From the NCBI GenBank assembly GCA_002269645.1, contig NIVC01000412.1, positions 806,001 to 870,000 on the forward strand: a stretch of DNA of 64,000 nt, given 5' to 3'. This DNA is from Macrostomum lignano (Eukaryota). The notes under the pieces are model-generated. The model ran no database searches. It was not told where the DNA came from and worked only from the letters and a program-made list of their open reading frames with translations. Position 1 is the stretch's first letter. Every line of letters begins with the position of its first letter. The position numbers and the translations under genes are program-made. Shown piece by piece: positions 1,072-38,600 of the stretch.

Positions 1072-2683
1072 ATGGTGTACAACTACACAAAACCCAGAGG
1101 CCCCATCGCCGCCATGTACAGCAGCCCGGGGCCAAAGTACATGCTGCCCAGCCTGGTTGGCCAGCCGCATCACGACCCTCGCTCCGTGCACAACCGCGGC
1201 CCGGCCTATCCTTTCGGCCTGAGGCACGGCAAATTCAAGGACGAATCGAGCCCGGGACCTTGCTACCTGCCGCTGACCTACAGAGACGGCAAAGATGGTT
1301 CTCCGCATTATTCGCTGTACGGCAGGCCAAAGGATGGCACCCTGTTCTCGGCCCCAGGTCCCGGCGCCTACAAGCCTGAGAGCACCAACAAGGAGGTGTA
1401 CTCAAGGGCACCGGCCTACAGCTTCGGCCTGAGGCATCATCAGTTCAGGACTGACAATACACCGGGTAAGGGAATGAGGCATTGCGGGCCCTCGACTGCG
1501 GCAGTACGAAATCTGTGGGTTCTGCTTCGTTACTTGCTGAGATTCTCAGGGTTGGGATTCTCGATTTTGGGATTCTCGATTTTGGGATTCTCGACTTTGG
1601 GATTTTTTACTTTGGGATTCTCGACTTTGGGATTCACGGTTTTGGGATTCTCGATTTTGGAATTCTCAGAGTTGGGATTATCAGGGTTGGGATTCTCAGG
1701 GTTGCATGGGATTCTCAGGGTTGGGATTCTCAGGGTTTGGGATTCTCAGGGTTTTATTTCTCTGTGTCGGGGCTCTCAATTTTTCTATTTAAGTTTTTTT
1801 GAATTAATGCGAAAAGAATACAGAATTCCCCAAAACGCAGCGGACTTTGCACTCCACCGCAGGTCCCAACGCGTACACGCCGGACCCCATGCTGGGCAAG
1901 ACTTTGCGCAGCGAGAAAAAAGCCGCCCCCAGCTACACATTGGTCGGCCGCTCCAAGGTCGGCGGCTTCCATGAGGACCTGCAGAAGGTGAGGATCTGAC
2001 AGGGGTTCAAAGGAGGGATCTGAGAGGGGGTCAATTGAGGGATCTGAGAGGGGTCAACTGCAGAGGGATCTGAGAGGGGGGTCAACTGAGGGATCTGAGA
2101 GGGGTCAACTGCAGAGGGATCTGAGAGGGGGGTCAACTGAGGGATCTGAGAGGGGTCAACTGTTTAAAGTGCATGTACCTGAAGTACATGTAGGAGAACT
2201 GAAGGAATATCACACATACATGTACAGCAGCGATCACCTACATGTATACCAAAGCTGCCACCCAAAACCGACCTCTGCAGACCCCGGGTCCAGGCGCCTA
2301 CAGCGTGGTACCGGCGGGCCGGTACAGGCACAACCCGCCGGCTTACAGCCTGACCAGCAGGAACTCGATGCCGGGTGACAGCACCACAAAACCGGGTCCT
2401 GGCGCTCACTCGCCAGAGACTGTGAGTTCATTTCTCAAACTTAAAAATTTAACAATTATATATGCAACTGCAATTGCAGTTCAGAATTTTGGAAAAAGGT
2501 ACATGTATTAGACTAACAAAAACGTTTTACACAACATATCGGCGATAGTATTTGATAGTACTTATCGACCTTTAAAACCTGCAGAATTTCTACCGCATGA
2601 AACGGGCGGCCCCAGCGTTCAGCTTCGGCATTCGCCATTCGCAGTACAAAGGCGAATTCATCACCGACGCCGATATGGAGTAA
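1072..2683 (+). CDS. ODF3: Outer dense fiber protein 3 / SHIPPO-1 (PGP-repeat) ciliary protein, 4 coding exons, ~252 aa
   Basis: join(1072..1465,1863..1987,2281..2421,2585..2683). All introns are GT-AG and phases are consistent (759 nt). Repeated PGPGAY / P.YSFG.RH motifs; N-term MVYNYTKPRGPIAAMYSSPGPKY; C-term APAFSFGIRHS. Confidence 0.92.
1549..1755. repeat. Minisatellite (GGGATTCTC-core, ~15-bp units) in ODF3 intron 1
   Basis: Tandem gggattctc(g/a)..tttt units; explains the spurious GFSILGF ORF extension. Confidence 0.85.
1990..2160. repeat. Minisatellite (GAGGGATCTGAGAGGGGTCAACT-like) in ODF3 intron 2
   Basis: About 6 degenerate 23-26 bp units starting directly at the donor site. Confidence 0.85.
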
Positions 2684-3369
2684 CATATAAAATATTGTTG
2701 ACAAAGTGCTGCTGCTACTTTTTCTCTACTAACAGTAGCATGACGCAGAATACGAACCTAATTTAAGCGCACGTGTTGAAAATAGTTATAATGTACTCGT
2801 ATGTTTTGCGCGCTTCTAATGAATATAACAAATTTTGTAACGCGCTTTTTATTTCAGTAGAAAAAATTGAAGTACCTTATTTATCGTCTCTGAAAATTCT
2901 AATCTAGTTTTCTGTTCGGAAGTTTTTTTATAAATTTACAACAATTTAGAATCTGAATGTGCAGTGAATTCTACAAAGCGATAAGTTTACACTGGTACTG
3001 TAGTACATTAATTGTGTAAGCGAGTTTAATGTAATGCGGATTTTTGTAGTCGTATTATGCCAGTAACATTTTATTAATAGAAGAATGCTACTCATTTTTT
3101 CCGCTATACTTAATTGGAACCATAGTAAAAAATGCTGCATAAATTATCTGAGTATTTTTGTTATCCAAAACATTTGCGCTTTAATTTTTTAAAATAAAAA
3201 TGTACACGAGCTGCAGAGCTTTCGGGATTTTTGAATTCTATTTTTATATAACAAGAATTCAGGCCGAATGTGAATCCGTCTGAGCTTTACCGTTTTATAA
3301 TTTAATACTACATTAAATAGATCTACCACATTGTAATGGCAGAAAAGTGGTGTAGACGGTTGAGACAAG

Positions 3370-4320
3370 TGTTCAATGAGGATAGAGACGGGTGTTTAAT
3401 GAGGCTAGAGCTGTTTCTAATGAGGGTAGAGACAGGTGTCTAATAAGGGTAGAGATAGCTGTTTAATTATGTTAGAGACAGGTTTCTGACTAGGGTAGAG
3501 ACAGGTGTCTAATGAGGCTTCAGACAGTCCACTAATGAGGGTAGAGACAGGTGCCTAATGAGGGTAGACAGGTGTCAGAGGCGGATGAGGACAGGTGTCT
3601 GAGGAGGGTATAGACAGGTGTCTGAAGAGGGTATAGAATGGTGTCTGAAGAGGGCTGAAGAGGGTATAGACTGAAGAGGGCTGTCTGAAGAGGGCTGAAG
3701 AGGGTATAGACTGAAGAGGGCTGTCTGAAGAGGGCTGAAGAGGGTATAGACTGAAGAGGGCTGAAGAGGGTATAGACAGGTGTCTGAAGAGGGTATAGAC
3801 AGGTGTCTGAAGAGGGTATAGACAGGTGTCTGAAGAGGGTATAGACAGGTGTTTGAAGAGGGTATGGACAGGTGTTTGAAGAGGGTATAGACAGGTGTCT
3901 GAAGCGGATGAGGACAGGTGTCTGAAGAGGGTAGAGACAGGTATCTGAAGACGGTATATAGACAGGTGTCTGAAGAGGGTATATAGACAGGTGTCTAAAG
4001 AGGGTATAGACAGGTGTCTGATGAGGGTTTAGACGTGTCTGAAGAGAGTACATAGACAGGTGTTTGAAGAAGGTAGAGACAGGTGTCTGAAGAGGGTATG
4101 GACAGGTGTCTGAAGAGGGTATAGACAGGTGTCTGAAGAGGGCTGAAGAGGGTATAGACTGAAGAGGGCTGTCTGAAGAGGGCTGAAGAGGGTATAGACA
4201 GGTGTCTGAAGAGGGTATAGACAGGTGTTTGAAGAGGGTATAGACAGGTGTCTGAAGAGGGCTATAGAGGGTATAGACAGGTGTCTGAGGCGGATGAGGA
4301 CAGGTGTCTGGAGCTGGTAG
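3370..4320 (+). repeat. 22-bp minisatellite (GAAGAGGGTATAGACAGGTGTCT / AATGAGGGTAGAGACAGGTGTCT); left arm of an inverted pair
   Basis: Tandem units visible; reverse complement of the array at 9655-10045. Confidence 0.9.
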
Positions 4321-5082
4321 ATAAAAAACAAAAAGGAAACTATGAACTAACACTCAATATTGATACAATTTATACAAGGAATGAACGAAAAAGAACTTAT
4401 ATTAAATAGGTCATGTTTATTATAGTATCACCAAATTAAAACTGAAATAATTTGCCAGAGCAGCCAGCCTTGGGACAGTTGGTGGTTAAACACAGAAAAA
4501 CACGCACATAGATGACTTGGCATACATAACGCATGTACTATAACATACTGTATGTTATTATGTCGCACAACACAAGGAAATTTGAGTTCTTCTGTACCAA
4601 AAGCTTGTTAAAACAAAATAGAAAAAAAACACAGCAGAAATGTAAAAGCAGGAATATTTATGCAGTTAATAATGCACGATAGATAGACAAATAAACACAA
4701 TAGTTAAATGGGAAGACAAATTAAAACAAAATTTAATAGAAGTAGGAATCGCACTAATAAACCAGTGGAATAATTCGATAAATTTGTCAACCGAATTTCA
4801 AGCGTCAAAATTTAAATATGAAAAAATAGTAATAATTTATAAAAACGAAAATTTCCACCCGATACAATCCAGCAAAGGTTGGGAAAAATGGCTAGTTTGC
4901 GCGGGCTGCGCTAACTGGCGTTTGTGTACGCTGCCCACCCCTGCCCCTCCCCCGCGGCTTTCCCCCACCCCCGGTGTTGGGGGGGGGGGGTTGCGTGGCG
5001 GGGGGTTTTATACCCCGCGGTTGGCTCTTTGGCCTCGCTGTCGCATTGCAATTGAAAAAAAAAATTTTTATGCTGCTGAGTC

Positions 5083-6114
5083 ATGTCACACGATTCTCTG
5101 ACGGTAAGAGAACTGCGCATGGCATTGCGTGCTAAAGGCTTGCAAACCGTAGGCAACAAGCGCACCCTATTGGAGAGACTTCTGCAGTCTCAAGGCTCAG
5201 TGGACACGGGACCCATCGATGAATCGGACACCAGCAATCCATCGAGAAGGCGAGGGCCCGACGACGGGACGGCGGCGGTCGGCGGCGGCGAGGCGGCAGG
5301 AGGGACCCACGGGACTGGCGACCTGGACCGGGACCTGCGGGAGGCAGAGAAGCAGCTGCGCTTGCTGACAATTCGTCGGGACCAAGCGCGCCTGGAAGCC
5401 GAGATCCGTCAGCTGGACCGCCGTGCCGATGAGCCGCAGCGGCGACCTGCAAATGCCTCAGTGCCCGGTGAGTACTCAAGCCTTGAGGATTTAGTGCTGG
5501 GACCTACTGTCAGAGTGCCGGATGAGGTGCAGCAGGCGGGGCAGCAGCACCCGAATGCGTACCGGGTGCCGGAGTTCATCAGCGCTCGCAAGCGGCTGGC
5601 GCTGAACAAGTCAAGTCAAGCCAGCAAGCAGGCCGCCCTGGACAGCCTCTCGGTTGGCGACTGGATCACCGGAAACGCCAACGCGCTGATGCAGATGCTG
5701 AAGGACGGCAGACTCCTCGTCCTCCGTGATGGCGCTATCGACATGTCGGAGCTGCTGGAGTACCTGAAGCACACGGCAAAAATTGGCGACCTCCTCGATC
5801 TCGGATTCGACCGCGGCCGCGTTTTGCGCTATGATGATGAGTACAGAGCGCAGCAGGCTGAGGCCGGCGCCTGGGACAGCTCGGTGACCGACCTGGGTCT
5901 GGTGGCGGCACACCTGATGGCTCCGAATCTTCAACTGCAGGCCGGCTCAGCGGGCAGGTCATCAGCAAAGCGACCGGTCTGCTTCGACTTCAACAAGGTG
6001 TCCGGCTGCCAGCGCAACCCGTGTCGTTTCGCACACAGTTGTAGGCGCTGCGGCCAGGCGCACTCGGAGGCCTCCTTCCACAGAGCGGAGGGCGGCCAGG
6101 CGGCAAAAAACTGA
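5083..6114 (+). CDS. Gag-like ORF1 (343 aa): N-terminal SAP domain, coiled coil, C-terminal CCCH + CxxC zinc-finger region
   Basis: LTVRELRMALRAKGLQTVGNKRTLLERL (SAP consensus); CFDFNKVSGCQRNPCRFAHSCRRCGQAH. Confidence 0.88.
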   Translation: MSHDSLTVRELRMALRAKGLQTVGNKRTLLERLLQSQGSVDTGPIDESDTSNPSRRRGPDDGTAAVGGGEAAGGTHGTGDLDRDLREAEKQLRLLTIRRDQARLEAEIRQLDRRADEPQRRPANASVPGEYSSLEDLVLGPTVRVPDEVQQAGQQHPNAYRVPEFISARKRLALNKSSQASKQAALDSLSVGDWITGNANALMQMLKDGRLLVLRDGAIDMSELLEYLKHTAKIGDLLDLGFDRGRVLRYDDEYRAQQAEAGAWDSSVTDLGLVAAHLMAPNLQLQAGSAGRSSAKRPVCFDFNKVSGCQRNPCRFAHSCRRCGQAHSEASFHRAEGGQAAKN

Positions 6115-6186
6115 TGGACGGGGTTCAGCGGCAGGGGTCTCTTAACATCGAGTCGCCCGCCCCTGCCGCTGCTTCTGTCGAACCCC
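6105..6186 (+). promoter_or_regulatory. Candidate -1 programmed ribosomal frameshift signal (A_AAA_AAC + 8-nt spacer + GC-rich hairpin)
   Basis: Heptamer 6105-6111 is in the gag reading phase and the -1 frame is ORF2. Stem 6120-6126/6180-6186 (7 bp) plus 6127-6137/6160-6170 (11 bp). Confidence 0.65.
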
Positions 6187-8087
6187 AAAAGGAGGGCGAC
6201 TCAAGCGGGACCCTCTCCACCGACTTGCGCCTTGAAGCCTGGCGCCTCGAGCTGGCCGACACGGAGATGCCAACGAAGCTCGCGCAGTTCGTTTTGAGCG
6301 GTGTGAAGGACGGTTTCCGCATCAGGAACGTCAGTAGTCCGGTGGACTCTGTCGAGCAGGAGAACTACGGCTCCATCGGTCAGCATCGAGTCGAGGTTCA
6401 GGCCCAAGTCCGCCGGGAACTGCAAGCTGGAAGATATCGCGTTAGCGCCAAGCCGACTATTGTGAGCGCGCTGGGCGCCATTCCGAAGTCCGGGGGCGGC
6501 ATCCGGCTCATCCATGACTGCAGCCAGCCCCAGGGTCGGGCCGTCAATGATTTGTTTGCTTGCCAGCAGAAGCTTCGGTTTTCTTCGGCGGCTGCCTTTG
6601 CCAGGAAGCTGCGCCAGGACATGTACATGTGTAAAGTCGACCTGAGCCAGGCCTACCGGTCTTGCGGCATTCACCCGGACGACCACTGCCTCACCGGTCT
6701 GAAGTTCACGTTCGAGGGCGAGGCGGAGCCGACCTACATGGTGGACACCCGGCTGCCGTTCGGAGCGGCAGCATCCGTGAGCAGCTTTTTCCAGATCAGC
6801 AACGCCATTCGGTTTATGATGCTCAAGCGCAGGTTCTTCAACTTCGAGGTCTACATGGACGACTTCGGCTTCGCGGGTTCGCTGACTGAGTGCTGGCGCT
6901 TTTACAACAAGCTGACGCAGCTGCTGCAGAGCCTGGGCCTGACTGTCAACTGGAAGAAGTGCGTGCAGCCGACGCAGGAGATGTGCTTCCTGGGCATTCA
7001 GTTCAACACGCAGTCGGGGCTGATGAGTCTGCCAGAGACGAAGGTCGAGGAGCTGCAGGCCTGCCTTGACCTCTGCTGCACAAAGCGGCGGATCTCCAAG
7101 CACGAGTTGCAGAAGCTGGTGGGCAGGCTCAACTGGGCCTGTCAGGTGGTCTGCAACGGCCGGCCGTTTCTGCGAGACCTGATCGACCGCGTCAACGACT
7201 TGTCGAGCCCGAAGGATCGGCTGTTGGTGGATGGCCAGTTCAAGAGCGTCCTGAGCTGGTGGAAAGTTGCTCTGCGGCAGCAGCCAGGTCGCGAGCTCTG
7301 GCCTGCTGCCAGGAGGCCGGTTGCCATGGAGACGGACGCCTGTCTGGTGGGGGCAGCGGCTGTTCTGAGAGATCCGGCTGGTTCTGACTGGTGCTATCTG
7401 CAGTGGGAAGTCGACGCTGGGAGCGAGTTCAGCGATTGCTGCATCAACTACAAGGAGGCTGCCGCGGTGCTGCTGGCGTTGCTGCACTGGCGCCGTCAAC
7501 TGCACAACTGCCGGATCGCTGTCTACTGCGACAATGCTGCAGCCTGCGCGATTATCAACAAGGGGTCATCCAGGGAGCCCCGGCTGTTGCGGCTGCTGCA
7601 GACTGTTGCTCTGCTGTGCCTAAAGCAGAACATTGTGGTCACCGCCCACCATGTGCCCGGCCGGTTTCAGCTGTTTGCCGACGCCGCCTCCCGCCTGCAT
7701 TGCCGGCAGGAGTTGCTGAATTTTCTGTTGCGAGCCTATGCAACCGCCTCTGTTTGCCCGCATGAATTTGCGGGACATGCGCTTAGCCCTGCCTCCGCCG
7801 CCTTTCTTTTTTTACAGGTCGCCTCCCTGGGTCTCTCGACGCTGCCGCCGACAAACTGCTCCAGCAGGCCTACGCATCATCGTCCAAGAGGTCGCTGTCA
7901 TCTGCTGTCCGCTCCTGGCAACGCTTCTGCCGAGAGCGGCGGCTCGACCCACTCGGCTGTCGGGCGGAGGATCTCGCAAACTACGTCCGCCAGCTCGTGG
8001 ACGGCCGGCTCAGCTCCTTCGGCAGCGTCCGCGTGCATATCAGCGCTCTGTCCGCCAGTTTCCGACTGGCGGGAGTGCCGGACCTGA
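6114..8087 (+). CDS. Reverse transcriptase / RNase H ORF2 (657 aa) of the YR retrotransposon
   Basis: RT motifs IRLIHDCS, KVDLSQAY, LPFG, YMDD, FLG; DIRS-type RNase H motifs ETDAC, INYKE, CDN, ADAASR. Confidence 0.95.
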   Translation: MDGVQRQGSLNIESPAPAAASVEPQKEGDSSGTLSTDLRLEAWRLELADTEMPTKLAQFVLSGVKDGFRIRNVSSPVDSVEQENYGSIGQHRVEVQAQVRRELQAGRYRVSAKPTIVSALGAIPKSGGGIRLIHDCSQPQGRAVNDLFACQQKLRFSSAAAFARKLRQDMYMCKVDLSQAYRSCGIHPDDHCLTGLKFTFEGEAEPTYMVDTRLPFGAAASVSSFFQISNAIRFMMLKRRFFNFEVYMDDFGFAGSLTECWRFYNKLTQLLQSLGLTVNWKKCVQPTQEMCFLGIQFNTQSGLMSLPETKVEELQACLDLCCTKRRISKHELQKLVGRLNWACQVVCNGRPFLRDLIDRVNDLSSPKDRLLVDGQFKSVLSWWKVALRQQPGRELWPAARRPVAMETDACLVGAAAVLRDPAGSDWCYLQWEVDAGSEFSDCCINYKEAAAVLLALLHWRRQLHNCRIAVYCDNAAACAIINKGSSREPRLLRLLQTVALLCLKQNIVVTAHHVPGRFQLFADAASRLHCRQELLNFLLRAYATASVCPHEFAGHALSPASAAFLFLQVASLGLSTLPPTNCSSRPTHHRPRGRCHLLSAPGNASAESGGSTHSAVGRRISQTTSASSWTAGSAPSAASACISALCPPVSDWRECRT

Positions 8088-8794
8088 CCAGGCACCCGCT
8101 GCTGCACCTGGTTCTGCGGGGAGCCAAGCGCGAGCTGGGGTCGGAGCCGAGTCACAAGCTGCCGGTGTCGCCAGACCTTTTGTCGAGACTGCGGCTGCAA
8201 GTCGACAGCTCGAATCCTGTGCAGGCGGCCTGCTGGGCTGCGGTCATGTGCGCTTGGTGGGGGATGTTCAGGAAGTCCAGCCTGCTGCCGCGAGGGCGCG
8301 CCGATCCGCCAGTGCTGCGACTGAGCTCGCTGGCAAGATGCCCCGAAGGCCTGCTTCTGACGTCCAGCTTCGGGAAGACCAACCAGTACGGTCGGACGCA
8401 TCGCGTGCTGCTGCCAGAGTTGACTTCGGGCCACCCGCTCTGTCCAGTGGCGGCACTGCGAGGCCACCTGCGCTGCAACCGGCTGAAGCAGCGGCAGCAG
8501 GGCCTGTTTTCATTCAGCAGTGGATCGTCCGGTCACGCATCTCTGACGTCCCGGAGGCTCGATGTACAGTTCAGGTCGTGGCTCGGCAAGGCGGGAGTGC
8601 CGGCGGCCGGGTTTTCTGTGCATAGCCTGCGGCGAGGCGCCGCCACCTGGGCGGCCCGGTGCGGCCTGTCAGTGCGGGAGATCCAGTGCGTGGGTGACTG
8701 GCGCAGCGACGCAGTGAGCGTCTACCTGTCCCGCGATGACACGGCTCTGCGTGCGGCGCGCAAGCTTGCTGTTGCGGCGCTTGACCAAACCTGA
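7818..8794 (+). CDS. Tyrosine recombinase ORF3; frame is open from at least 7817, with no in-frame ATG before the catalytic domain
   Basis: Catalytic motifs FRKSSLL (R), KTNQ (K), HSLRRGAA (HxxR), VGDWRSDAVSVYL (W, Y). N-terminal arm AYASSSKRSLSSAVRSWQRFC lies upstream of the ORF-track GTG start at 7997. Confidence 0.92.
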
Positions 8795-9654
8795 CGTGTT
8801 TCGCGGTTTTTTTGGAAGAAAGGTTTTGGGCTCCTTTTTTGTTTGCTTGTCCGCTTTTGCTTGCCTCTGCTTGGTCTGCTTTTGCTCTAGTCTGTTTTCT
8901 TGCTGCTTTTGGTGTTGGGGGGAGTGCATGGCAGCCTTCCCTGTCCTCCTCGCTGTTCCTGCGCCATTTGCTGCTCTTGAGCTTGCTGCGTTCGTCTTCT
9001 GGGGTGGGCAGTGGGCACTAATGGCTAGTTTGCGCGGGCTGCGCTAACTGGCGTTTGTGTACGCTGCCCACCCCTGCCCCTCCCCGCGGCTTTCCCCCAC
9101 CCCGGTGTTGGGGGGGGGGGGGGGGGGGTTGCGTGGCGGGGGGTTTTATACCCCGCGGTTGGCTCTTTGGCCTCGCTGTCGCATTGCAATTGAAAAAAAA
9201 ATTTTTTTTCGTATCCTGTCACTCTTTTAATCCTGCTTTGATCCGTTCTAACTGTTGTCAATAATGCTTTAATATTTTCTCGTAATCGGTCTGAAATATA
9301 CGGGGGGGAGTGCATGGCAGCCTTCCCTGTCCTCCTCGCTGTTCCTGCGCCATTTGCTGCTCTTGAGCTTGCTGCGTTCGTCTTCTGGGGTGGGCAGTGG
9401 GCACTAATGAACAAAACTTACAAAAATAGAATTTACAATTAATTTAGCGCGTCAATTTCATAGAAGAAACTGAGATAATGTCACAGAAAGCAGACAAACA
9501 AAAATTATCTGTTGTTTACACAGATTACGGTGGATAGTAGTTCAGGCTCCCAGTAGCATAAGTAGTATGTAAAGCAACTAAAATAGAAATTTCTATCTTA
9601 CAGCAGTTTGAATGAAAACTTATTAATTAAATTTAACTTAGAGGTCCTCACCTC

Positions 9655-10045
9655 TAATTGTCCTCATCCCGCTTCAGACACCTGTCTATACCCTCTTCAA
9701 ACACCTGTCCATACCCTCTTCAGACACCTGTCTACCCTTATTAGACACCTGTCTCTACCCTCATTAGACACCTGTCTCTACCCTCATTAGGCACCTGTCT
9801 CTACCCTCATTAGACACCTGTCTCTACCCTCATTAGACACCTGTCTCTACCCTCATTAGACACCTGTCTCTACCCTCATTAGACACCTGTCTCTACCCTC
9901 ATTAGACACCTGTCTCTACCCTCATTAGACACCTGTCTCTACCCTCATTAGACACCTGTCTCTACCCTCATTAGACACCTGTCTCTACCCTCATTAGACA
10001 CCTGTCTCTACCCTCATTAGACACATGTCTGTACCCTCATTAGAC
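9655..10045 (-). repeat. 22-bp minisatellite (TAGACACCTGTCTCTACCCTCAT); right, inverted arm
   Basis: Reverse complement of the 3370-4320 array, with mirrored order of unit variants. Confidence 0.9.
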
Positions 10046-10077
10046 AAATTACCGACTTGCAATGATCTCATACTCAC

Positions 10078-11520
10078 GAGTCATGATGCAGGCTAATGAG
10101 CTCATTCTCATGAACCATGATGCAGGCTACTGAGCTCATTCTCATGATGCAGGCTACTGAGCTCATTCTCATGAGTCATGATGCAGGCTACTGTGCTCAT
10201 TCTCATGAATCATGATGCAGGCTACTGAGCTCATTCTCATGATGCAGGCTACTGAGCTCATTCTCATGAGTCATGATGCAGGCTACTGAGCTCATTTTCA
10301 TGAGTCATGATGCAGGCTAATGAGCTCATTCTCATGAGTCATGATGCAGGCTACTGTGCTCATTCTCATGAGTCATGATGCAGGCTACTGTGCTCATTCT
10401 CGTGAGTCATGATGCAGGCTACTGTGCTCATTCTCATGAGTCATGATGCAGGCTACTGAGCTCATTCTCATGAGTCATGATGCAGGCTACTGTGCTCATT
10501 CTCATGAGTCATGATGCAGGCTACTGTGCTCATTCTCATGAGTCATGATGCAGGCTACTGTGCTCATTCTCGTGAGTCATGATGCAGGCTACTGTGCTCA
10601 TTCTCATGAGTCATGATACAGGCTACTGAGCTCATTCTCGTGAGTCATGATGCAGGCTACTGAGCTCATTCTCATGAGTCATGATGCAGGCTACTGAGCT
10701 CATTCTCATGAGTCATGATGCAGGCTACTGTGCTCATTCTCATGAGTCATGATGCAGGCTACTGTGCTCATTCTCGTGAGTCATGATGCAGGCTACTGTG
10801 CTCATTCTCATGAGTCATGATGCAGGCTACTGTGCTCATTCTCGTGAGTCATGATGCAGGCTACTGTGCTCATTCTCATGAGTCATGATGCAGGCTACTG
10901 AGCTCATTCTCATGAGTCATGATGCAGGCTACTGTGCTCATTCTCATGAGTCATGATGCAGGCTACTGTGCTCATTCTCATGAGTCATGATACAGGCTAC
11001 TGAGCTCATTCTCTTGAGTCATGATGCAGGCTACTGTGCTCATTCTCATGAGTCATGATACAGGCTACTGAGCTCATTCTCGTGAGTCATGATGCAGGCT
11101 ACTGTGCTCATTCTCATGAGTCATGATGCAGGCTACTGAGCTCATTCTCATGAGTCATGATGCAGGCTACTGTGCTCATTCTCATGAGTCATGATGCAGG
11201 CTACTGTGCTCATTCTCATGAGTCATGATACAGGCTACTGAGCTCATTCTCGTGAGTCATGATGCAGGCTACTGTGCTCATTCTCATGAGTCATGATACA
11301 GGCTACTGAGCTCATTCTCGTGAGTCATGATGCAGGCTACTGTGCTCATTCTCATGAGTCATGATGCAGGCTACTGAGCTCATTCTCATGAGTCATGATG
11401 CAGGCTACTGTGCTCATTCTCATGAGTCATGATACAGGCTACTGAGCTCATTCTCGTGAGTCATGATGCAGGCTAATGAGCTCATTCTCGTGAGTCATGA
11501 TGCAGGCTAATGATCTCATT
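10078..11520. repeat. 34-bp satellite (GAGTCATGATGCAGGCTACTG[A/T]GCTCATTCTCAT), ~40 copies
   Basis: Period 34 read directly from the sequence. Confidence 0.95.
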
Positions 11521-11745
11521 CTAGAAAAATGTGATTTCAAAACTGAAATTTAAACAAAAAAATGTATTTTTCAGTAAGTTACTTGGATACTTATGAGAAG
11601 CATTAGGGATGCCTCTACATCACGTGATGTACACCTATTTAAAGTTCATAAGGGTTACAACATTTCATACTTATACATTGAGATATCAACAATAAATAAA
11701 CCAGATTAAACATAATTTAGTAACCAGTTTGATAAACAATATTAA

Positions 11746-14700
11746 TTACACAGGATTAAGATCGGTGAAGGCAATAAGCCGCTCGATGCCGATAAGCCTG
11801 AACAGGATCGGGCAGGTGTACACAACGTTGAACGCTACAACGCTGTAGGTAACGAATTTGTAGGGCAATTCAACTTTCAACAGTTGCAGGTTCTTAGCAT
11901 TGCCCGGCTCGAGTTTGTACAGAAAGCACAGGCAGTGGTAGGTGATGGACTTCATAGCGCTGCGAGTGGCAATCAGCACTGTGCCACCCAGAGCCATGCG
12001 CATAGCCTGCGGCGCGCGGGGTGAGGATGGCTTGTTGAGATTGAGATAGAGTGTAATATATGGGGTATAGATCATCTACTAGAGTAGACCAGAATATCTA
12101 GTAGAATAGAATAGAAAATCTAATACAGAATAATAGAGCATCTAATAGGGCAGAGTATAACATCTAATAGGGCAGAGTATAACATCAAATAGAGCAGAGT
12201 AGAACATCTAATAGAGCAGAATAGAATATCTAATAGATCAGAATAGAACATCTAATAGATCAGAATAAAACATCTAATAGATAAGAATAGAACATCTAAT
12301 AGAGCGGAGTAGAACATCTAATAGAGTAGATTAGAACATATATCATCACAGAACGCAACCGCACTCACCGTGCTCCCAATGAACTCAATATCAGGAAATT
12401 TCACCGCATACGGCGGTGGCTCCAGAGGCCGATCATAGAAGCCCTGAGCATAGGCCAGCCAGGAGGCAACTGAGACGCCGCACATCACAGCCAGAGTCAT
12501 GGTGGAGTCGCCGCGGGCGGAATTCCATTGGTCCAGTCTGGGATAGGCGTAGGACAGCAGCAGCAGGCCGGTTGTGATGAGGAACGGCGAGTACGGATGG
12601 GTCAGCTGGAAGTTGTCCATGGCGTCCAGGAACGGGTAGATGAAGGCCAGGAACACCATGCCGAATAAGGCGCCGCTGAGTACGTCCTGAAAGTACATCG
12701 TGTTCTTCAGTATTGGCTTTGGGAAGCGGCTTTAGCTTACAGTACTGAGTATTTAACCCAGCAACTGAGGATCTGGGAGGCTGGCCTAGCAACTGAGGAT
12801 CTGGGAGGCTGGCCAAGCAAGCAACTGAGGATCTGGGAGGCTGGCCTAGCAACTGAGGATCTGGGAGGCTGGCCTAGCAACTGAAGATCTGGGTAGCACA
12901 CCACATCTTAAGAAAGGCAAGTGTGCAACGCTATGCCATTTGACTTCACTGTTATGCGCAACATCTATGACCCAAGGGTCACACGGTTATTCCTACCGGT
13001 TCATTTAATCAAAAGCTTCGAGAATCTCTTATCAGCTGTTACGTAAGCTGCTATCAAGTTGAACTCAGCAGGCACAGTGTATGATTGATTAATTAAAATC
13101 TATGTGGCATAGCGGGCTTTAAATAGGAAGGCTGTTACCAAAAGTAAACATTGGTCCGCATATTTGCTATAGATAACGGGCCATTCCAATTAAAAATCAT
13201 AAACTCACCAGAACGCTGTGCATGCCAAGGTAAATTCGACTCAAACAGACCAGTAGGCTCCAGAATACGCATAATATGAAACCCAGTTCAGTTGAGAACT
13301 GCAAATGAAATGCAATATGGTTATTGGGACTGAAGAGACACATTAGACACAGCATATCGTATTTACAGACAATAGACACACAGCACATCATATTAAAGAC
13401 ACAATTAATAGACACACAGCACATCATATTACAGACACATTAGACACACAGCACATCATATTTCAGACACAATAGACACACAGCACATCATATTAGACAC
13501 AATAGACACACAGCACATCATATTAAAGACACAATTAATGGACACACAGCACATCATATTACAGACACATTAGACACACAGCACATCATATTTAGACACA
13601 ATAGACACACAGCACATCATATTAGACACCATAGACACACTGCATATCATATTACAGACACATTGGACACACAGCACATCATATTTAGACACAATAGACA
13701 CGCAGCACATCATATTACAGACACAATAGACACGCAGCACATCATATTACAGACACAATAGACACGCAGCACATCATATTACAGACACAATAGACACGCA
13801 GCACATCATATTACAGACACAATAGACACGCAGCACATTATATTTCAGGCACAATAGACACGCAGCACATTATATTTCAGACACAATAGACACGCAGCAC
13901 ATTATATTTCAGACACAATAGACACGCAGCACATCATATTACAGACACAATAGACACGCAGCACATCATATTACAGACACAATAGACACGCAGCACATCA
14001 TATTACAGACACAATAGACACGCAGCACATCATATTACAGACACAATAGACACGCAGCACATTATATTTCAGACACAATAGACACGCAGCACATCATATT
14101 ACAGACACAATAGACACGCAGCACATTATATTTCAGACACAATAGACACGCAGCACATCATATTACAGACACAATAGACACGCAGCACATCATATTACAG
14201 ACACAATAGACACGCAGCACATCATATTACAGACACAATAGACACGCAGCACATCATATTACAGACACAATAGACACGCAGCACATCATATTACAGACAC
14301 AATAGACACGCAGCACATCATATTACAGACACAATAGACACGCAGCACATTATATTTCAGACACAATAGACACGCAGCACATCATATTACAGACACAATA
14401 GACACGCAGCACATCATATTACAGACACAATAGACACGCAGCACATCATATTACAAACACAATAGACACGCAGCACATCATATTACAGACACAATAGACA
14501 CGCAGCACATCATATTACAGACACAATAGACACGCAGCACATTATATTTCAGACACAATAGACACGCAGCACATCATATTACAGACACAATAGACACGCA
14601 GCACATCATATTACAGACACAATAGACACACAGCACATCATATTTAGACACAATAGACACACAGGCAGAGCACATCATATTACAGACACAATAGACACGC

Positions 14701-15529
14701 AGCACATCATATTACAGACACAATAGACACGCAGCACATTATATTTCAGACACAATAGACACGCAGCACATCATATTACAGACACAATATACAACATTGG
14801 CACAAAACAGTCAGGGTCACAGAGTGCACAACATACCAGATAGCGGTTGTGAGTCAGGAAGAACAGCGAGAACGGTATAGTGACGGCAATGGTGGCGTGA
14901 GTAGATGGAAATCCATACTCAAGTTCGTAACGCTTCTCCAGCTTAGCCACAGGCGGACTGGCCGGCCGGGGACTCCTAATAAGATCCTTGATAGCCTGGC
15001 CGAACCACATGGAGAAGCCCCAGGCTATGACCACACGCCGACAAACGTAGCCATCAACATTCCAGAACCAGTAGGGGAAAAATGTACAGTTGAATTCCTC
15101 ATTGCCCAGCATAGCGCCAAAGGAGAACAGATGGTACAGGAACAGGTTCTTCACTTTATAATCGACATTGTTCTTCATTGAATAGTCCATCAGCGAGTGC
15201 TGCACGCGACTTTTCACGCTCTGTTTCCATTGGTCGTCGCTGCGCTGCCTCCTGTGTCGAAGGTGCTGCGGTCTGCCCTGCTGATGCTGCTGTTGAAGAG
15301 GCTTTCCAGCTGTCACAGATGGCTGAATCCGGACATCTTGCTCTGTTCCAGAATCATTATCGCTGCAGTTTGATAGCTCCATCTTGTCCGGCTCATTGTC
15401 CTCGTCCTCCTCGTCCATGGAGTTCAATCCGCTGTCCTTGAAGCCGATGTCCAGACCGCATAGGCTTTGAAATCTTGCCACCAGATTAGGATCGTTGAGT
15501 TGAGAGATGAGACTCTTGACCCGATACAT
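11746..15529 (-). CDS. SGPP: Sphingosine-1-phosphate phosphatase (PAP2 family), 4 coding exons, ~453 aa
   Basis: complement(join(11746..12006,12369..12686,13209..13298,14837..15529)); all GT-AG, phase 0, 1362 nt. PAP2 motifs KDLIRSPRP, GFPSTH, SRIYLGMHSVLDV. N-term LNDPNLVARFQSLCGL resembles the SGPP2 N-terminus. Acceptor at 15541 just upstream of the ATG. Confidence 0.93.
12095..12325. repeat. ~20-bp minisatellite (AGAACATCTAATAGAGCAG) in SGPP intron 3
   Basis: About 10 degenerate tandem units. Confidence 0.8.
12763..12893. repeat. ~29-bp tandem repeat (GCAACTGAGGATCTGGGAGGCTGGCCTA) in SGPP intron 2
   Basis: 4-5 units. Confidence 0.8.
13335..14790. repeat. 32-bp satellite (AGACACAATAGACACGCAGCACATCATATTAC) filling SGPP intron 1
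   Basis: Period 32; occupies about 95% of the intron 13299-14836. Confidence 0.95.
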
Positions 15530-18097
15530 CGGTGCAGTGGCTGTAGCAAGAGAGTTGATTAGGCCAAGTAAGAGCAGTGTCAGACTCAAACTACCGACAC
15601 CCTAGCCACACCTTTATGCATAAAAAACGTCTCAGATCGAACGCAAGAAAGCAAGCGAGCGAGTCTTGCTAATAATAGGCTTGAGGACGTGGAGGAGGGG
15701 TGGCGGCGGAGAGGACGGAGCGGTGGCGCGATGGGGTGGGTCCGCAGCCAATATAATGCCAGGGCATGTACTGCACTGCACTGCGCAATATTGTGTGTAA
15801 CAGTACGAGCTCAGGCAGAGAAAGTAGAATGAAAAAACTAACATAGAATCTTAATTTTCTAAACGAGAAGCTTTATGAATATCAATAGAACTATAAAAAA
15901 GGCACAACATATCAAAATATGAACATTGGGTCTGCTTCCTATTAAAAGCAATAACATTTTTTTTGTGCTGAAAATGAAAAATTCCTATCTCCGTAGTGTA
16001 TTTTTAGGCGAAAAGTGGCCTTCAAAACTTTTTCCTTGAAACGTGAGTGTCGCATCCTGTATATATACGTTGCTTTAGTTGTCTTTGGTGGAAACCTTAT
16101 CAATCTTATAGCTCCTTTAGGAAGATTTAGATTGAGCTTTAGCGCTATAACTATTAAGCTAACTCCAGAGTAACTAGATAACTAGATAGACAGCGGTCAG
16201 CCAGTGAGAGAGTTTAAGGCTAATAGCACGAGTCCAGCGCGTGTACAGAGCAGACTTGGTCCACAGAATTTCTCTCTCAACAAATAGGCAAAAAAGAGGC
16301 AGTTACACCCAACAGAACAGAAAAGCTTGGGTAAGAGAGTAAAATGGTACTTATATATAGAAGTATTTAAGAAACGCAGCTCGAGTCTAAAGTTTTTTGC
16401 TAGGAAACGACCTAGAGAAATAATAAAGTACTCCTCGCGTAATTAGGGTTTAAATGCGCGTGTATGACCTGCAAGGGAATGCAGGGGTCGCAAAAGTTGT
16501 TTAATTTCCCCTTAACGGCCAGATAGAGAGGCTAGCGCATGACCACGGGGACAGAGAAGGGGAGATAGGAGAGAGAATAGAGCAAAGACAAGAGAGATAG
16601 GAGAAATGAGAAAATGATAGGAGACGAGACGAGAGGAGAGGAGAAGAGAGGAGAGAAGAGAGATTAGAGAAAGGGATATTAGAGAGGAGAGCTAAGAAGA
16701 GACCAACCTAGAGCTATTGTCGCTTGTTGCTATTTTCAATTTTAAAAGGACCCGAGAGCTGGAGCTTTTAGTTCAGCTATTCCTATTGGTTTGCAAATAT
16801 ATTTCACTAAATTTAAATGAAAATAAGACAAGCTTACTGCAAACACCTGTACAAAATGGCCCCACCTGTGTCTGTGTAGGCGGGTCAGCTGGAGAATACA
16901 AGCAGCCTGGGCAGAGCAAGAAATCCATAAATAGAAACTTGGATTGCAATGCTTTGAGATTAAGATTGATTCAATGTGAACTGTGGACCACATGGTATGG
17001 TATGCTTACAGTGTATAGTCCAGTTTCAACCTAGATAGTCTAGATTAGTAATGCAAGCAAGCATTAGCTAAGTGAAAACTGCTGGCACGCACTGACACGA
17101 GTTCTGTAACTTGTAAGCTAAATCGGGAAATTACATTAAGTACACAGCGAGTGCATGGCAAGCACAGTAACACTTGAAAGAGAAAACAGGGCTACATGAC
17201 CTAACTTATAGGCTTATCAAATACAAGTTATACTTATTGAACTCAATGATCCTCAGAGGTTTTTTCTGATACCTTCATGAGACACTTCATATCTTTGACA
17301 GATTGGAAGACCTATACATTGCAGAAAGAATATAATATGACGAAGAGAAAGTGGGGCTTGTATGCAGGAATATTGGCCAAAAGAGGGTTATTATGCAATT
17401 CACACCATGAGGGCCAATCCCCAGGGCACAGAGTGTACAAGTCTGACGATTAGAAAGTCACAGCCACTGTAAACCTCAGGAGTCAGCAGAATGGACAACA
17501 GCATCTCAGTGCTACATGCATTTGTGGGATGATGGTGCCAAAAGTATTATTATTATCACAATATAGACTTCTACTTGAAAAATCCTACTTTTAATAGATA
17601 ATTCATACTTTTAATTAAATACATGTGCAAATAAAGTAGATATAAATAGAAAAAATTAAATTGAATAGTTTTTATTATAGAAATAATAAACTTTAACTTT
17701 ATCAAAAATCTTTTTATTGTATACTTTGTCTTTGATTATGCCATGAAAATATTTTGTCTAAGTTTAAATAAAATATCTATAGCTACTATTGCTCTATTTA
17801 AGCCAAGGGATATTCAAATTCATTGACTAAGGCTTAGTATATTTAAGATAATATATCTTATATTTAGATAATACACTTATCTTATAATTATAATTATAAT
17901 AGGGCTTTTAGACCTAAATTTTTTTCAACTTCTTTTTTGTTAATTTATTGATTATTACTCATTTTTATATTTTGGATAACACTCTTAAGATAGCTTTTCA
18001 ATATATATCTAGCTGATAGATCTAAATTCCTAAGATTTCAAATAGGTTAAGGGATGCAACACATTGTCATTACATTTATCAATCTATATAATATGTT

Positions 18098-32677: not shown

Positions 32678-35600
32678 CTACACATGGCTAATTGTTAAAT
32701 ATGACGACTTCAAAGACGACGGCTGGCTCGGCCGCTTCGAATCGATCATTCTGGAGCACGAGCGGCTTTGCGCCAGCGGCTCGGCTGCGTTCATCATCGA
32801 TTGGCCGCTGCTGCTGGCGCCATCGGCGTTAATCCTTGGCCTGGAGACGCAGCTCGGCACCTGGAACTGGAACTGCTGGCAGGCCATGTAGCCCTCACTG
32901 CCGGAGTGATGCGGCGGCAGAGGCTGGGTGAGCTCCTGGTAGGCTGCCCGCTGGTGCTGCTGACCCTGATAGTGCAACAACAGCTGCTGCTGGCTGCGGT
33001 AGTTTCTGCTGCTGCTTGAGCTGATGACCTTCGTAGCTGAGAGGGCATCATTGTGGCGAATGAATGCGATGACTTACCAGTAGCATAGGAGGTGGCTTTC
33101 GTATTTATGATAAATTTACAACCTTTATCCCATACATGTACGTCTCTGAACCCCACACCGCTAACCCCACATCGCTAACCCCGCATCGCTAACCCCACAC
33201 CGCTAACCCACACAACTAACCCCGCACCGCTAACCCCACACCGCTAACCCACACAACTAACCCCGCACCGCTAACCCCACACCGCTAACCCACACCGCTA
33301 ACCCACACCGCTAACCCCACACCGCTAACCCACACCGCTAACCCCACACCACTAACCCCGCACCGCTAACCCCACACCGCTAACCCCACACCGCTAACCC
33401 CACACCGCTAACCCCACACCGCTAACCCCACACCGCTAACCCACACCGCTAACCCCACACCGCTAACCCCACACCGCTAACCCCACACCGCTAACCCCAC
33501 ACAACTAACCCCGCACCGCTAACCCCACACCGCTAACCCCACACAACTAACCCCACACCGCTAACCCCACACCGCTAACCCCACACCGCTAACCCACACC
33601 GCTAACCCCACACCACTAACCCCACACCGCTAACCCCACACCGCTAACCCACACCGCTAACCCCACACCGCTAACCCCACACCGCTAACCCCACACCGCT
33701 AACCCCACACCGCAGACACGATTAGGTGATAATTCTCTTTTAATCATTATGCGATAATTTTCCAGAAAAAGAGCATGATCGACAACTCACGCATCGTTCT
33801 GCTTGCGTTTGCTGCAGCGGCCGCGGCGGCGGCGGCGACGGCGTCTGGATCATCTTCTACAGAGCTGAGGTCGTCGCCGTTATTCAACGAGGCGTTGCGG
33901 TGTCGCTGCGGATGCCGGTGCGGCTGTTGCCTGCCGAGGCTGTCATATCGATGCGAACCACCGCCTCCTGCGCCTGGCATCGCTACCTGCGGAGTGACAG
34001 GCACCGAGACTGATACTGGAGTGACAGGCACAGAGACTGATAATGGAGTGAACAGACACCGAGACTGATACTGGAGTGACAGACACCGAGACTGATACTG
34101 GAGTGACAGACACCGAGACTGATACTGGAGTGACAGGCACCGAGACTGATACTGGAGTGACAGACACCGAGACTGATACTGGAGTGACAGGCACAGAGAC
34201 TGATAATGGAGTGACAGGCACTGAGACTGATACTGGAGTGACAGACATGAAGAGCTCTGCTCACCATGGCATACTGTTTATCAAGCAAGACTCTCTCTGA
34301 ACTGCTCGCGGGAACATCCATGGGAGACAGGCAGCCTATTGACTGTTGCAGCTGCCTCTGCTGATTCTGTTGAGTTGACGAACTCTCCACCGATGTGCCC
34401 TGTGTTCTTGAGCGATTTTCGTCTGAAATTTGACAGGTTGATGTAGTCAGGCGTAACCGAAATTATTGACACAAACGATGATACAATCTTATCTTTTAAT
34501 TAATCATCGAAAATGTTTAAAATAAACAAAATTGCATTGATATTTCATTTTACTAAGACAAGAAACCCACTAAATAAGATAATCTGCCCCATCTGAATCA
34601 AGGCCCCCGACTATCCAATGCAGCATTCCGCATAGCAGTCTTGGATTAATGTGCTCAGTCGTGAGCTCAGCCGTTAGCTACAGCTGCTCAGATGAGCATT
34701 ATTCAGAAAATCCTTCTTTTACTTACCGCAAGAATTGCTCATTTTTTCCACTTCTCTCTCTTCCTCTCGCTCGGTGTGACTTGAGTGCATTGGAAAAAGA
34801 CCACAACTGATCAGGCAGCTTACAAAAGGCAGATTCACGAAAAAAGAAAAAATCGATGGCAATACTATAGTACGAGTATAAGGCATGCTTCTTCTAGGAC
34901 TTTTGATACTAAAAAAATTAACAGAAAAACTAATTTTTCATTGCGTCAGCTTCAGGCTTCAGGCTTTCATAAATTCGAAAGTTAAAGTTTATATAGTCAA
35001 ACTCCACAGTGTTGAAAGGGCCATTTAAATAGAGCTTTTATAAACGTCAATATTTAGCTTTTTGAAGTTATAGGCTTCAGAAGTTTCCAACATTACTACC
35101 TGTAATACCCGAATGCTCAGATATAATCCTATTTTCTATTTTGGCTCCTCATTACAATTTCCGCTCTTGTTGGAACAGAATATAAAAGTATGACTGTTTT
35201 GGACACCCTGGCGCAAAGCCTTCGACGATATGCTCCCACAACCAAGAGCTCTTATCGTTGAGGCGTCACTCACTAGGTGCACTTTTACGACGGTGACCCG
35301 CGCACCAGCGCAGCAGAATAATCACCGCCAAAGTGGTCAGGCCCACCAGAGCCACCAGGAACACGATTAGCACCGAAGCCAGCACTGCCGGCTTGGCATC
35401 TCTTTCGCTCCCGTTGAAATTCTCGCCGTCAGCGGCGCTACCTCCGGCTGACAGTGTCGGATCGTTGCCGTGGCCTGACAGCCACCGGTTGTCATTAGCA
35501 GCGACTGAACTGCCCGGTCGCCGACCGCCGCCCTCGAAAGTGACGATCACCAGCTTCCGACTGACGCGGCCGCGCGGCCTGTCCTTGTCGAAGACCTCCA

Positions 35601-38600
35601 GCTGAAATCGGTAGACACCGGCGGTGCACAATTTCGGCGTGGAATTCAGGCACACGTCGCCGGAATTCGAATCGATTTGGAAGGTGTGCAACTGCGAGCT
35701 CGAACCCCGGTCTACTAGCCGGTAGCCCATTTGACGGTGCTCAGCGACGGCGTCAGCATCGTTGGCCGCAACGTCATCAGCAGTCGTCAGGCAATTACCT
35801 GTCAAAGCTCGGTCGCAGCTGACGTTGAGCCTCAGTGGCTGCGTGTGCACGAACTCTGGAAAGTTGTCGTTTACGTCGGCCAAGCGGACAATCAGGCTGG
35901 CTGTGCCCGTTAGCCGTCGCACCGTTCCGCTATCCACCGCCAGCAGCTCCAGAGTGAACGAGCTTTGACCATGCGGCATGTCTGCGTCAAGTTGACGGTT
36001 GAGCAGCACCTGACCGGAGCCGTCCACACGAAAGGTCGGCGAGCCACGCAGCCTGTACGTCACAGTACCGTTCAGGCCCAAGTCGCCGTCAATGGCAGCG
36101 ACTTTTGTCACTATCGAGCCGATAGTGGCATTTTCTAGCACGGTGACTGGCGGTAGCCATTCAGGCAAGCCTTGTGAACTGCAACCAGCAACTGCCTGTG
36201 GATCACTTAGATTAATCAGGAACCTCGGATAGCAGTCATTGACGTCGAGAATTCGAACGGAGACGTTGGTCTCAGCCTGGTGGATGACGGCTCCATCATG
36301 AATTGCATCAATGTCCTGGACGACAAGGCTAAAACTGAAAGCGTCTTTGGTCTCGCGATCAAACTTATCCGTAGTAGTGAGCGAATAGCTGTTGTTGCGG
36401 TCGTAGTCAACTTGGAATTTCGATGCGCCGTCGCCTCGGATTTCAAAACGACGATTGGCCCGGTTCTGACCGTCGTAATCAGGATCGTGGATGCGGAACT
36501 GCGGAGGTTAGGGTTATAAGTTTATTTAATTGGTGCATTTTATAGCCAGGGAGCTGTGTGCACTTTAGGCGACATTGTCACACAACCGGCGACAGGCATT
36601 ACACAACTGCCCATTCTGCCGACTCTCCTGAGAGCAGACACACAAGCGCGCGGATACGTACGCAGTCATACGCACAGGCACACACTCACACAGGAGTGTA
36701 CAGCGGCCCTAACTTTATTTAACCTTGAAGGCCGTTAATTGCACGAGCAGAGCCAAGCTGAGATTACAATTTAGCCCCATATTATGGCGACTGCACTTAG
36801 AATCGAGCCTGGGCCGCTAGCATATACAAGCGAGAGTGCCGCGCTAGACGGCTAAGTTGCAACCAAGGACCACTAAGAAGTTACCGTTGTAATTTTGAGT
36901 GCAACTGAGATACAGAGTTGTGAGCAATGCAAAGCTGGCCTTCAAAATATTTTACAATATTTACGACTGTTACGTACGATGTACGTACAACGGTAACTTC
37001 TAGTGGTCCTTGACTGCACCCCAATTAGTTAGGGGCGCTTAATAACCTAAAATTTTTATGCTCTGGAATGACAGAATCTTTTACAAGCCAGGACTTGCTA
37101 AGTAATTTTTGCCAACCCACAACTCAAACGATTTGGACAATGTGAAGTTCTGAGCTCATTAGTATATCAAGTTTACTGTCCTCAACGAAATAAATTTAGC
37201 TCGTAAAGCTGTGAAAAGCGACCCATTCATGCAGTTTGCAGTTTTTCTTATAAACACTTACATTATAGACTCGGGACGACTCTTTCGTGTCCTCTGAAAT
37301 GCTAAAGTCGATTGGCGTCACCTCAAACTTGGGCGCATTGTCATTCTGATCCAGCACTGCAATGTAAACTTCCCGTGTGCTTGTTTTCTGCGGAGTTCCA
37401 CCGTCGTAGCATTGAATCCCCACCACGTAGCTACTGCGTTCTTCTCTGTCTAGCGAGTAGGTTGCATTCAATTCGTAGGACACCGGCGATGACGGAGCCG
37501 AACTGCTGGTCAGTAAAAACCTGGGCGGGTTAAACTCGTCCGGCCGCAGCGAGCAGGTGACAATGCCTCCAGCGCCGGTGTCTAAATCGCTGGCTATAAT
37601 GCTGAGAATGTGAAGTGGTACTTTATTGTTCTCAGTGATGGACACGTGATAATTTCTGTTTTTAATCTGAGGCGGGTTGTCATTCTCGTCTAAAACAATG
37701 ATCGTCACAGTGGCCGTTGCGGACTTTGGCGGCTTTCCGTTGTCCACTGCCGCGACCACAACGCGATGCTCCTTGATCTGCTGATCATAGTCCAACTCAC
37801 TGGGGTTCTTCAGCGTCAAACTGCCGCGTCTGGTGAGGCTGAAGAGGTTGCTTTTATCCGACACTAACGTGTAGTGCACCTGGCCGTACTTCGAGTCAGC
37901 GTCGGTGGCATTCAAACGCAACAGCGGATTCGGCGGATTGGTCTCCGACACGCTGACGTTAAATTTCTGGTTGGGGCTCCACTTAGGCTCATTGTCGTTG
38001 ACGTCAATGACGCGGACGCTGACGGTGAGGCTGGCAGTGTGACGCCCGTCCGAGGCAATCAAACAGTAGGTGTACTGCTCGATCTTTTCCCGGTCAAGTC
38101 CGTCCAACAGCTTGAGATACACGTCCCTGGGCCCGCCGTTGCTGTTGTTTTGCAGTTCGAGAGCAAAAGTCGGGTCGGCCGGCTTGCCCGGAGTGCACGA
38201 CTCCAGACGGTAGCTCAGGTGGCAGCTGGCGAAGCCTCTCTTATCGGCGTCCTCCGCCTTCGGCAGGCTGAGCTTTTTTCCGTGTTCAGCGCTCTCCTGC
38301 ACTTCCACCTCCTTCTGGTACGGACCGAAGTTCGGCGGCGAGTTGTTCTGATCGTCCACCTGGATTTTCACGTCGACAAGCTTGGGGACCCTCTGCTCCC
38401 TGGAGTTGCTCATGAACACCTCGGTCTTGATCTGGCAGACGTCCTTGGCTGTCTCCTCGTCACAGTTTGGATTGCTGTAAGAACTGCAGGCTGTCTCGCG
38501 GATTAAAGGTCCGATAGAAGTCAAATTTCCGCCGGAGTCCACCCGGACAATCTCATCAGCCTGCGCTATCTGGTACGTTACGTCACTCCAGTCATCCGAA

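Follow-up and report, generated by a model that had tools for sequence, protein, structure and literature searches.

A probable -1 ribosomal frameshift signal with a covarying pseudoknot at the gag-pol junction of a Ngaro-type retrotransposon in Macrostomum lignano

How does a retrotransposon make its reverse transcriptase (RT) when the gene for that enzyme lies in a different reading frame from the gag-like gene before it? The question is raised by an element in the Macrostomum lignano assembly GCA_002269645.1, contig NIVC01000412.1, found in a stretch of 64,000 nucleotides (positions 806,001 to 870,000 of the forward strand) that was analysed as a whole and is called the window below. All coordinates count from the first letter of the window, and all features of the element lie on its plus strand. 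The element occupies 4889-9409, and two of its open reading frames (ORFs) meet end to end: ORF1, in the position of gag (5083-6114, 343 amino acids), and an RT/RNase H ORF (6114-8087), which is read in frame -1 with respect to gag. The most probable answer, to which we would give about 85%, is that the junction carries a -1 programmed ribosomal frameshift signal, which would set the ratio of the ORF1 ("Gag") product to a Gag-RT/RNase H fusion protein.

What is found at the junction itself? Read out from the sequence, the gag ORF closes with GCA AAA AAC TGA, in which AAAAAAC occupies 6105-6111 in X_XXY_YYZ phase relative to the gag frame. The stop codon TGA (6112-6114) directly adjoins this heptamer and shares its last base with the start of an ATG at 6114-6116. 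The pol frame stays open throughout 6045-8087, and hence across the heptamer, and it contains both the RT and the RNase H domains. AAAAAAC occurs a single time in the whole element, and A_AAA_AAC is the one XXXYYYZ motif to be found in phase within the entire gag ORF. A heptamer followed by a spacer and a structure at the gag-pol boundary is the textbook arrangement for -1 frameshifting in retroviruses and long terminal repeat (LTR) elements. A_AAA_AAC in particular is among the heptamers on which eukaryotic ribosomes are most prone to shift (PMC5009743). An earlier interpretation made from the letters of the window alone (the sequence-only reading) had proposed -1 frameshifting at this place; its heptamer, phase and -1 RT frame are correct to the base, its coordinates for the spacer, stem arms and bulge all hold in the sequence, and so does its arithmetic for a fusion of about 1001 amino acids (343 + 1 + 657 codons).

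The signal would be expected to work as follows. Most of the ribosomes translating gag would stop at TGA 6112-6114 and release the 343-residue ORF1 product. Some would be held up while the Lys and Asn tRNAs occupy A_AAA_AAC (6105-6111), owing to the proposed fold of the RNA that begins 8 nucleotides (nt) further on. Both tRNAs would then re-pair one base back, in a tandem -1 slip, and translation would resume in the pol frame from 6111, yielding the predicted fusion. That slippage takes place, and how often, we infer from the sequence and its conservation.

Which RNA structure could impose such a pause? After an 8-nt spacer (6112-6119) comes a stem in two parts. In the outer part, here termed S1a, GGGGTTC at 6120-6126 pairs with GAACCCC at 6180-6186; in the inner part, S1b, AGCGGCAGGGG at 6127-6137 pairs with CCCCTGCCGCT at 6160-6170. 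The resulting hairpin of 7+11 base pairs (bp) has a 9-nt bulge on its 3' side between S1b and S1a (6171-6179) and a 22-nt loop (6138-6159). The segment 6112-6195 folds at -40.1 kcal/mol (z = -3.15), and one of 200 shuffled sequences was equally stable; a 75-nt segment of the cassette gave z = -4.36, against z of +0.2 to +1.2 for three control segments inside pol. Overall, the energy of the hairpin lies between -38 and -40 kcal/mol, with z from -3.2 to -4.4. The computed fold thus agrees with the bulged hairpin of the sequence-only reading, whose arms and bulge are present as described. The hairpin was, however, an incomplete account of the structure, since one more helix had gone unnoticed. 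Within the loop, 6150-6158 (GAGTCGCCC) can pair at every base with 6194-6202 (GGGCGACTC), a segment that begins 7 nt after the end of S1a. This helix, S2, has 9 perfect base pairs and a duplex energy of -20.3 kcal/mol, and was matched by 9 of 5000 dinucleotide shuffles. On the computed pairings, the putative stimulator is therefore a three-helix pseudoknot (S1a, S1b and S2), more than a bulged hairpin. A search of Rfam with the cassette returned no matching family.

If the signal matters to the element, it should have been kept in its relatives. DNA could be read for seven lineages of the subfamily whose gag carries a SAP domain: the window, the L001 group, L006, L089, L090, L091 and L092. The L001 group consists of four near-identical copies and was counted as one lineage; its gag is 64% identical to that of the window, the cassettes are 85% identical, and blastn gave 70% identity over 3.5 kb between the window and the near-identical copy L007. 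In all seven lineages AAAAAAC is followed directly by TGA at the end of gag, with pol in the -1 frame. Heptamer, stop codon and all three helices are common to the window, L001, L006 and L089, the gags of which are 45-64% identical, and the first helix begins 8, 10 and 11 nt past the heptamer in L001, L006 and L089, respectively. The bulge is of equal length in the window and L001, and S2 duplex energies range from -16.5 to -20.7 kcal/mol across the four lineages.

The pairing has also been maintained through change. In hand-anchored tables of these four lineages, compensatory pair types occur at six of the nine pairs of S2 and at 4 of 12 positions of S1b, and S1a has compensatory pairs at two of seven positions between the window and L001. 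In the alignment of the window with L001, 96% of cells pair, compared with 30-51% when the partners are slid by 1-3 columns, and four double changes are seen. When a covariance model was trained on just the window and L001, it recovered the site both in L006 (E = 5e-05) and in L089 (E = 7e-04). MAFFT alignments of the cassette were set aside, as they misplaced the 3' arms of L006 and L089, and pairs were counted by script instead; a global MAFFT identity profile was not used either, the cassette being misaligned in it. The compensatory changes alter the amino acids encoded in the pol frame, which argues that selection has acted at the level of the RNA and not of the protein. The three remaining lineages, L090, L091 and L092, have other, weaker hairpins, which suggests that the pseudoknot is specific to one clade and the heptamer more widely shared.

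The sequence-only reading had tied its proposal to conservation of heptamer and stem and to covariation across copies of the element. Both features proved to be conserved, and the compensatory changes come to 12 pair positions, with zero broken pairs within the helices as defined. Its proposal of -1 frameshifting is accordingly strengthened: heptamer, phase, abutting TGA and structure have persisted, with compensatory changes, in diverged relatives, and because the signal is conserved in this way it is very probably real. Searches for still other copies added none. A profile scan with the gag alignment against collections of metagenome, prokaryotic-genome and viral contigs found zero gag relatives, and a gapped DNA pattern for the cassette gave chance matches only, in bacterial and viral contigs, none of which encoded gag or RT.

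Does the heptamer go with the -1 offset beyond the SAP-gag subfamily? The gag family retrieved by protein searches was small and the RT family large, and a metagenome scan with the RT alignment gave 80 loci with RT identities of 31-46%. Their junctions were classed by script after near-identical copies had been collapsed, and the loci with a long gag ORF were counted: 18 have a -1 overlap, 18 a single in-frame stop and seven a +1 overlap. Fifteen of the 18 independent -1 loci have AAAAAAC within the final 60 nt of gag, every time in phase 0, and none of the 18 in-frame-stop loci or the seven +1 loci has it there; the background frequency of AAAAAAC is 0.19 per kb. Two further -1 loci bear the canonical heptamers T_TTA_AAC and G_GGA_AAC. 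At the protein level, Lys-Asn is by far the commonest C-terminal dipeptide among the gag-family representatives, where it ends 19 of 151.

Relatives of the other two classes show features of their own. In L002 (1107-1109), L003 (1533-1535) and about 18 further loci (L016, L026, L035 and L065, for example), gag and pol are in the same frame with one TGA or TAG between them; the base after the TGA is mostly C (TGA CTA G in L003) and that after the TAG mostly G. These arrangements suggest that the single-stop relatives use stop-codon readthrough in place of frameshifting. The relatives with a +1 offset form one RT clade, which includes L018, L020, L030, L037, L041 and L042. Six of the seven +1 loci have an in-phase TTT_CGT 12-51 nt upstream of the gag stop (at 1282-1287 in L018, for example), in five cases as CGT_TTT_CGT, and the background of TTTCGT is 0.31 per kb. 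TTT_CGT is thus a candidate +1 shift site, of the type in which a Phe codon is followed by an Arg codon.

In a neighbour-joining tree without support values for its branches, the junction types are clade-specific and interleaved, and the in-frame TGA pair L002/L003 is placed, in the same unsupported tree, as sister to the -1 clade of the window. We advance tentatively, with somewhat less than even confidence, the broader claim that this is the first covariation-supported frameshift pseudoknot for tyrosine-recombinase retrotransposons and that gag-pol expression has switched repeatedly within one RT superfamily, between slippage by -1 on A_AAA_AAC, readthrough of one TGA or TAG, and a +1 shift at in-phase TTT_CGT, each confined to its own clades. 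If this is true, the family is a natural experiment on the interchangeability of recoding signals, and the alternation of the three types by clade offers comparative material on how such signals are exchanged in evolution.

Several points weigh against a frameshift signal of the kind proposed here. Support for the pseudoknot is limited to four lineages from a handful of samples, and the homology of the helices in L006 and L089 was set by hand; both MAFFT and the covariance model align these two in other registers. The more distant -1 lineages lack a consistently significant downstream fold, with a mean z of -0.83 compared with 0.07 for controls (p = 0.02). The geometry is demanding as well. 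The 7-nt linker leading to S2 is short for an S1 of 18 bp, and for all three helices to coexist, the 9-nt bulge would have to work as a hinge; a fold of 6112-6226 restricted to nested pairs gives 6120-6126 a competing partner at 6208-6214. S1a, S1b and S2 are taken here to form together in one RNA. Finally, the ATG at 6114 would permit independent initiation of pol in this copy.

This last point leads to the strongest of the rival explanations, in which ribosomes stop at TGA 6112-6114 and either restart at ATG 6114-6116 or reach it by scanning, so that a separate RT/RNase H protein of 657 residues is made. The TGATG overlap (6112-6116), which the sequence-only reading had pointed out as an alternative, does exist, in the window and in the L001 group, and ORF2 opens with an ATG here. 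The overlapping ATG is nevertheless found in just these two of the seven close lineages; L006, L089, L090, L091 and L092 are without it, and all of them retain AAAAAAC-TGA. Measured from the gag stop, the seven lineages have their first pol-frame ATG at a distance of 0, 0, 36, 138, >320, 159 and 81 nt. The conserved pol motif SSDLRL..W is encoded upstream of the first ATG in L089 and L090, and the N-terminus of pol in these lineages therefore appears to need a shift. Reinitiation also leaves unexplained both the phase-specific heptamer of the -1 loci and a covarying pseudoknot 7-11 nt past it. We regard this explanation as improbable, and the reinitiation alternative of the sequence-only reading finds no support beyond the overlap itself.

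Could the frame instead be changed in the RNA? Under transcriptional slippage, the polymerase would add an extra A within the A6 run at 6105-6110 and so bring pol into frame before translation begins. A run of six A is indeed present at the site, and polymerases are known to slip on runs of A in other systems; the topic is covered in PMC5009743. All 15 occurrences of AAAAAAC share one codon phase, however, which transcriptional slippage does not need, and the two relatives with T_TTA_AAC and G_GGA_AAC have no long homopolymer. Six A is moreover rather few for a cellular polymerase to slip on efficiently. Nor would transcriptional slippage need a structure, and yet one is conserved at a spacing of the frameshift type. 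This explanation seems to us less probable still than reinitiation.

Hardly any credence can be given to the view that there is no function, that the offset arose by mutational decay in this copy and heptamer and hairpin are accidents of GC-rich coding sequence: such sequence readily folds and the window holds a single copy, but a decay mutation is excluded by conservation, with offset, heptamer and helices recurring in lineages at 45-64% gag identity, and the repeats of the element are 95-100% identical, its three reading frames lack internal stops, and the observed fold and the S2 helix are rarely reached by shuffles. Programmed -1 frameshifting at A_AAA_AAC is thus the reading that best accounts for the junction.

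What kind of element carries this signal? Its repeat pairs and termini give a Ngaro-type layout, in the order A1, gag, RT/RNase H, tyrosine recombinase (YR), B1, A2, B2. The split direct repeat A1 (4889-5069) is 95% identical to A2 (9021-9207), and B1 (8917-9020) is 100% identical to B2 (9303-9409), with a unique stretch of 95 nt separating A2 from B2. The GC content of the element is 55-62%, compared with about 40-45% in the flanks. Both ends of the element and the B1-A2 junction share ATG/AATG (4889-4891, 9018-9020 and 9407-9409), which would fit recombination at a short core sequence without target-site duplication.

ORF1 has an N-terminal SAP domain (Pfam E = 5.7e-07), a coiled coil, a helical core and a C-terminal Cys/His finger-like motif. 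Its AlphaFold model has a mean confidence score (pLDDT) of 61, and the SAP domain alone matched solved structures; sequence and fold searches detected no homology to capsid proteins. Since these searches recognise the SAP domain only, "gag" is to be taken as a positional label. The RT/RNase H ORF matches Pfam RVT_1 (E = 9.7e-14) and RT_RNaseH (E = 1.9e-05), both above the cut-off. The nearest solved structures to the RT are those of Ty3 and foamy-virus RTs, and the ORF product is 66% identical to P0001. The putative tyrosine-recombinase frame (7787-8794) matches Pfam Phage_integrase with E = 1.6e-04 and 21.9 bits, below the curated cut-off of 27.1, and H-x-x-R and Tyr motifs can be seen towards the C-terminal end of its translation. 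Between RNase H and the start of the YR frame there are about 60 residues, and Pfam gave no match to a methyltransferase domain following RNase H. All three genes are free of internal stops and frameshifts, and the only changes of frame are the two -1 offsets between ORFs, both of which are common to L007. From the order of its ORFs, its split direct repeats and its lack of a methyltransferase domain, the element is assigned, on sequence features, to the Ngaro-type tyrosine-recombinase retrotransposons. No named Ngaro reference element was among the search matches, and the relatives are metagenome or run-assembly contigs.

The second junction is that between RT/RNase H and the recombinase. The recombinase frame, again in -1 relative to RT/RNase H, is open from 7787 (in the region 7783-7840) and overlaps it by 301 nt, as in L007, with no ATG before 8246. 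A T_TTT_TTA at 7808, in the RT phase, was considered as a second slippery site for this offset and rejected, since L007 is without it. At about 7790-7816, in a block conserved with L007, pyrimidines form a tract that ends with CAG and resembles a splice acceptor. In the representative library, P0133 (758 amino acids) runs in one ORF from the N-terminal part of gag through the finger motif and the N-terminal motif of pol to the C-terminus of the recombinase; a complete RT would not fit into this length, and P0133 would therefore derive from a related element, either by deletion or as a processed transcript.

The surroundings of the element are rich in repeats. Arrays of a 23-nt tandem repeat flank it in inverted orientation (3358-4268 and 9676-10046) and are 81-86% complementary, and long arrays of 34-nt and 32-nt units follow at 10063-11522 and 13336-14793. 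The element may thus lie inside a larger repeat structure. Among the host genes nearby are long exons encoding cadherin domains, a gene for a sperm-tail PG-rich repeat protein and an ORF resembling PAP2, at 35266-38767 (minus strand), 1072-1974 (plus strand) and 14771-15589 (minus strand). The cadherin exons and the sperm-tail repeat gene indicate that the host is an animal.

How does the signal compare with known systems? The -1 signals of retroviruses and LTR elements, and those of genes derived from retrotransposons such as PEG10, combine a heptamer of the A_AAA_AAC type with a pseudoknot or stem-loop downstream. The signal of the window resembles them in that the structural ORF comes first, the enzymes are in the -1 frame and the slippery site is an X_XXY_YYZ heptamer; as in retroviruses and LTR elements, a spacer of about 8 nt leads to a stable downstream pseudoknot, and the RT is by sequence of the Ty3/foamy type. 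The element itself differs from theirs: it has neither protease nor DDE integrase, and it carries a putative tyrosine recombinase and split direct repeats rather than LTRs. The signals differ as well, since here every close lineage has the zero-frame stop right next to its heptamer, helix 1 comes in two parts, with a bulge of 9 nt, and the first loop, of 11-12 nt, is long. A likeness to readthrough of the gammaretrovirus type is found in L002/L003 and the roughly 18 relatives like them, which would reach the same end through a different form of recoding. In the element of the window, on the other hand, pol is in the -1 frame, so that readthrough cannot join its ORFs.

With the Ngaro-type elements, of the order DIRS, the element shares the order gag-like ORF, RT/RNase H and putative YR, the lack of a methyltransferase, the A1...B1 A2 B2 repeats and a length of about 4.5 kb (PMC3783388, PMC3266345, PMC9210276). 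It differs from them in that both of its ORF junctions are -1 overlaps, the first with a conserved recoding signal. ORF overlaps are not usual in Ngaro-type elements (PMC3266345); overlapping ORFs have been noted in Ngaro-like families of Xenopus, with no mechanism given (PMC9210276). The accessible literature on DIRS-order elements speaks of "overlapping ORFs" only, and no link of Ngaro-type elements to programmed frameshifting was found in it; this literature excludes the founding description of Ngaro, so an earlier mention is possible. The conserved heptamer and covarying pseudoknot suggest that elements of this order set their Gag:Pol ratio by a retrovirus-like translational trick, and in annotation ORF1 and ORF2 would be better modelled as a fusion than as two genes or a "frameshifted pseudogene". 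The signal is, in short, a familiar and canonical mechanism in a less familiar host element.

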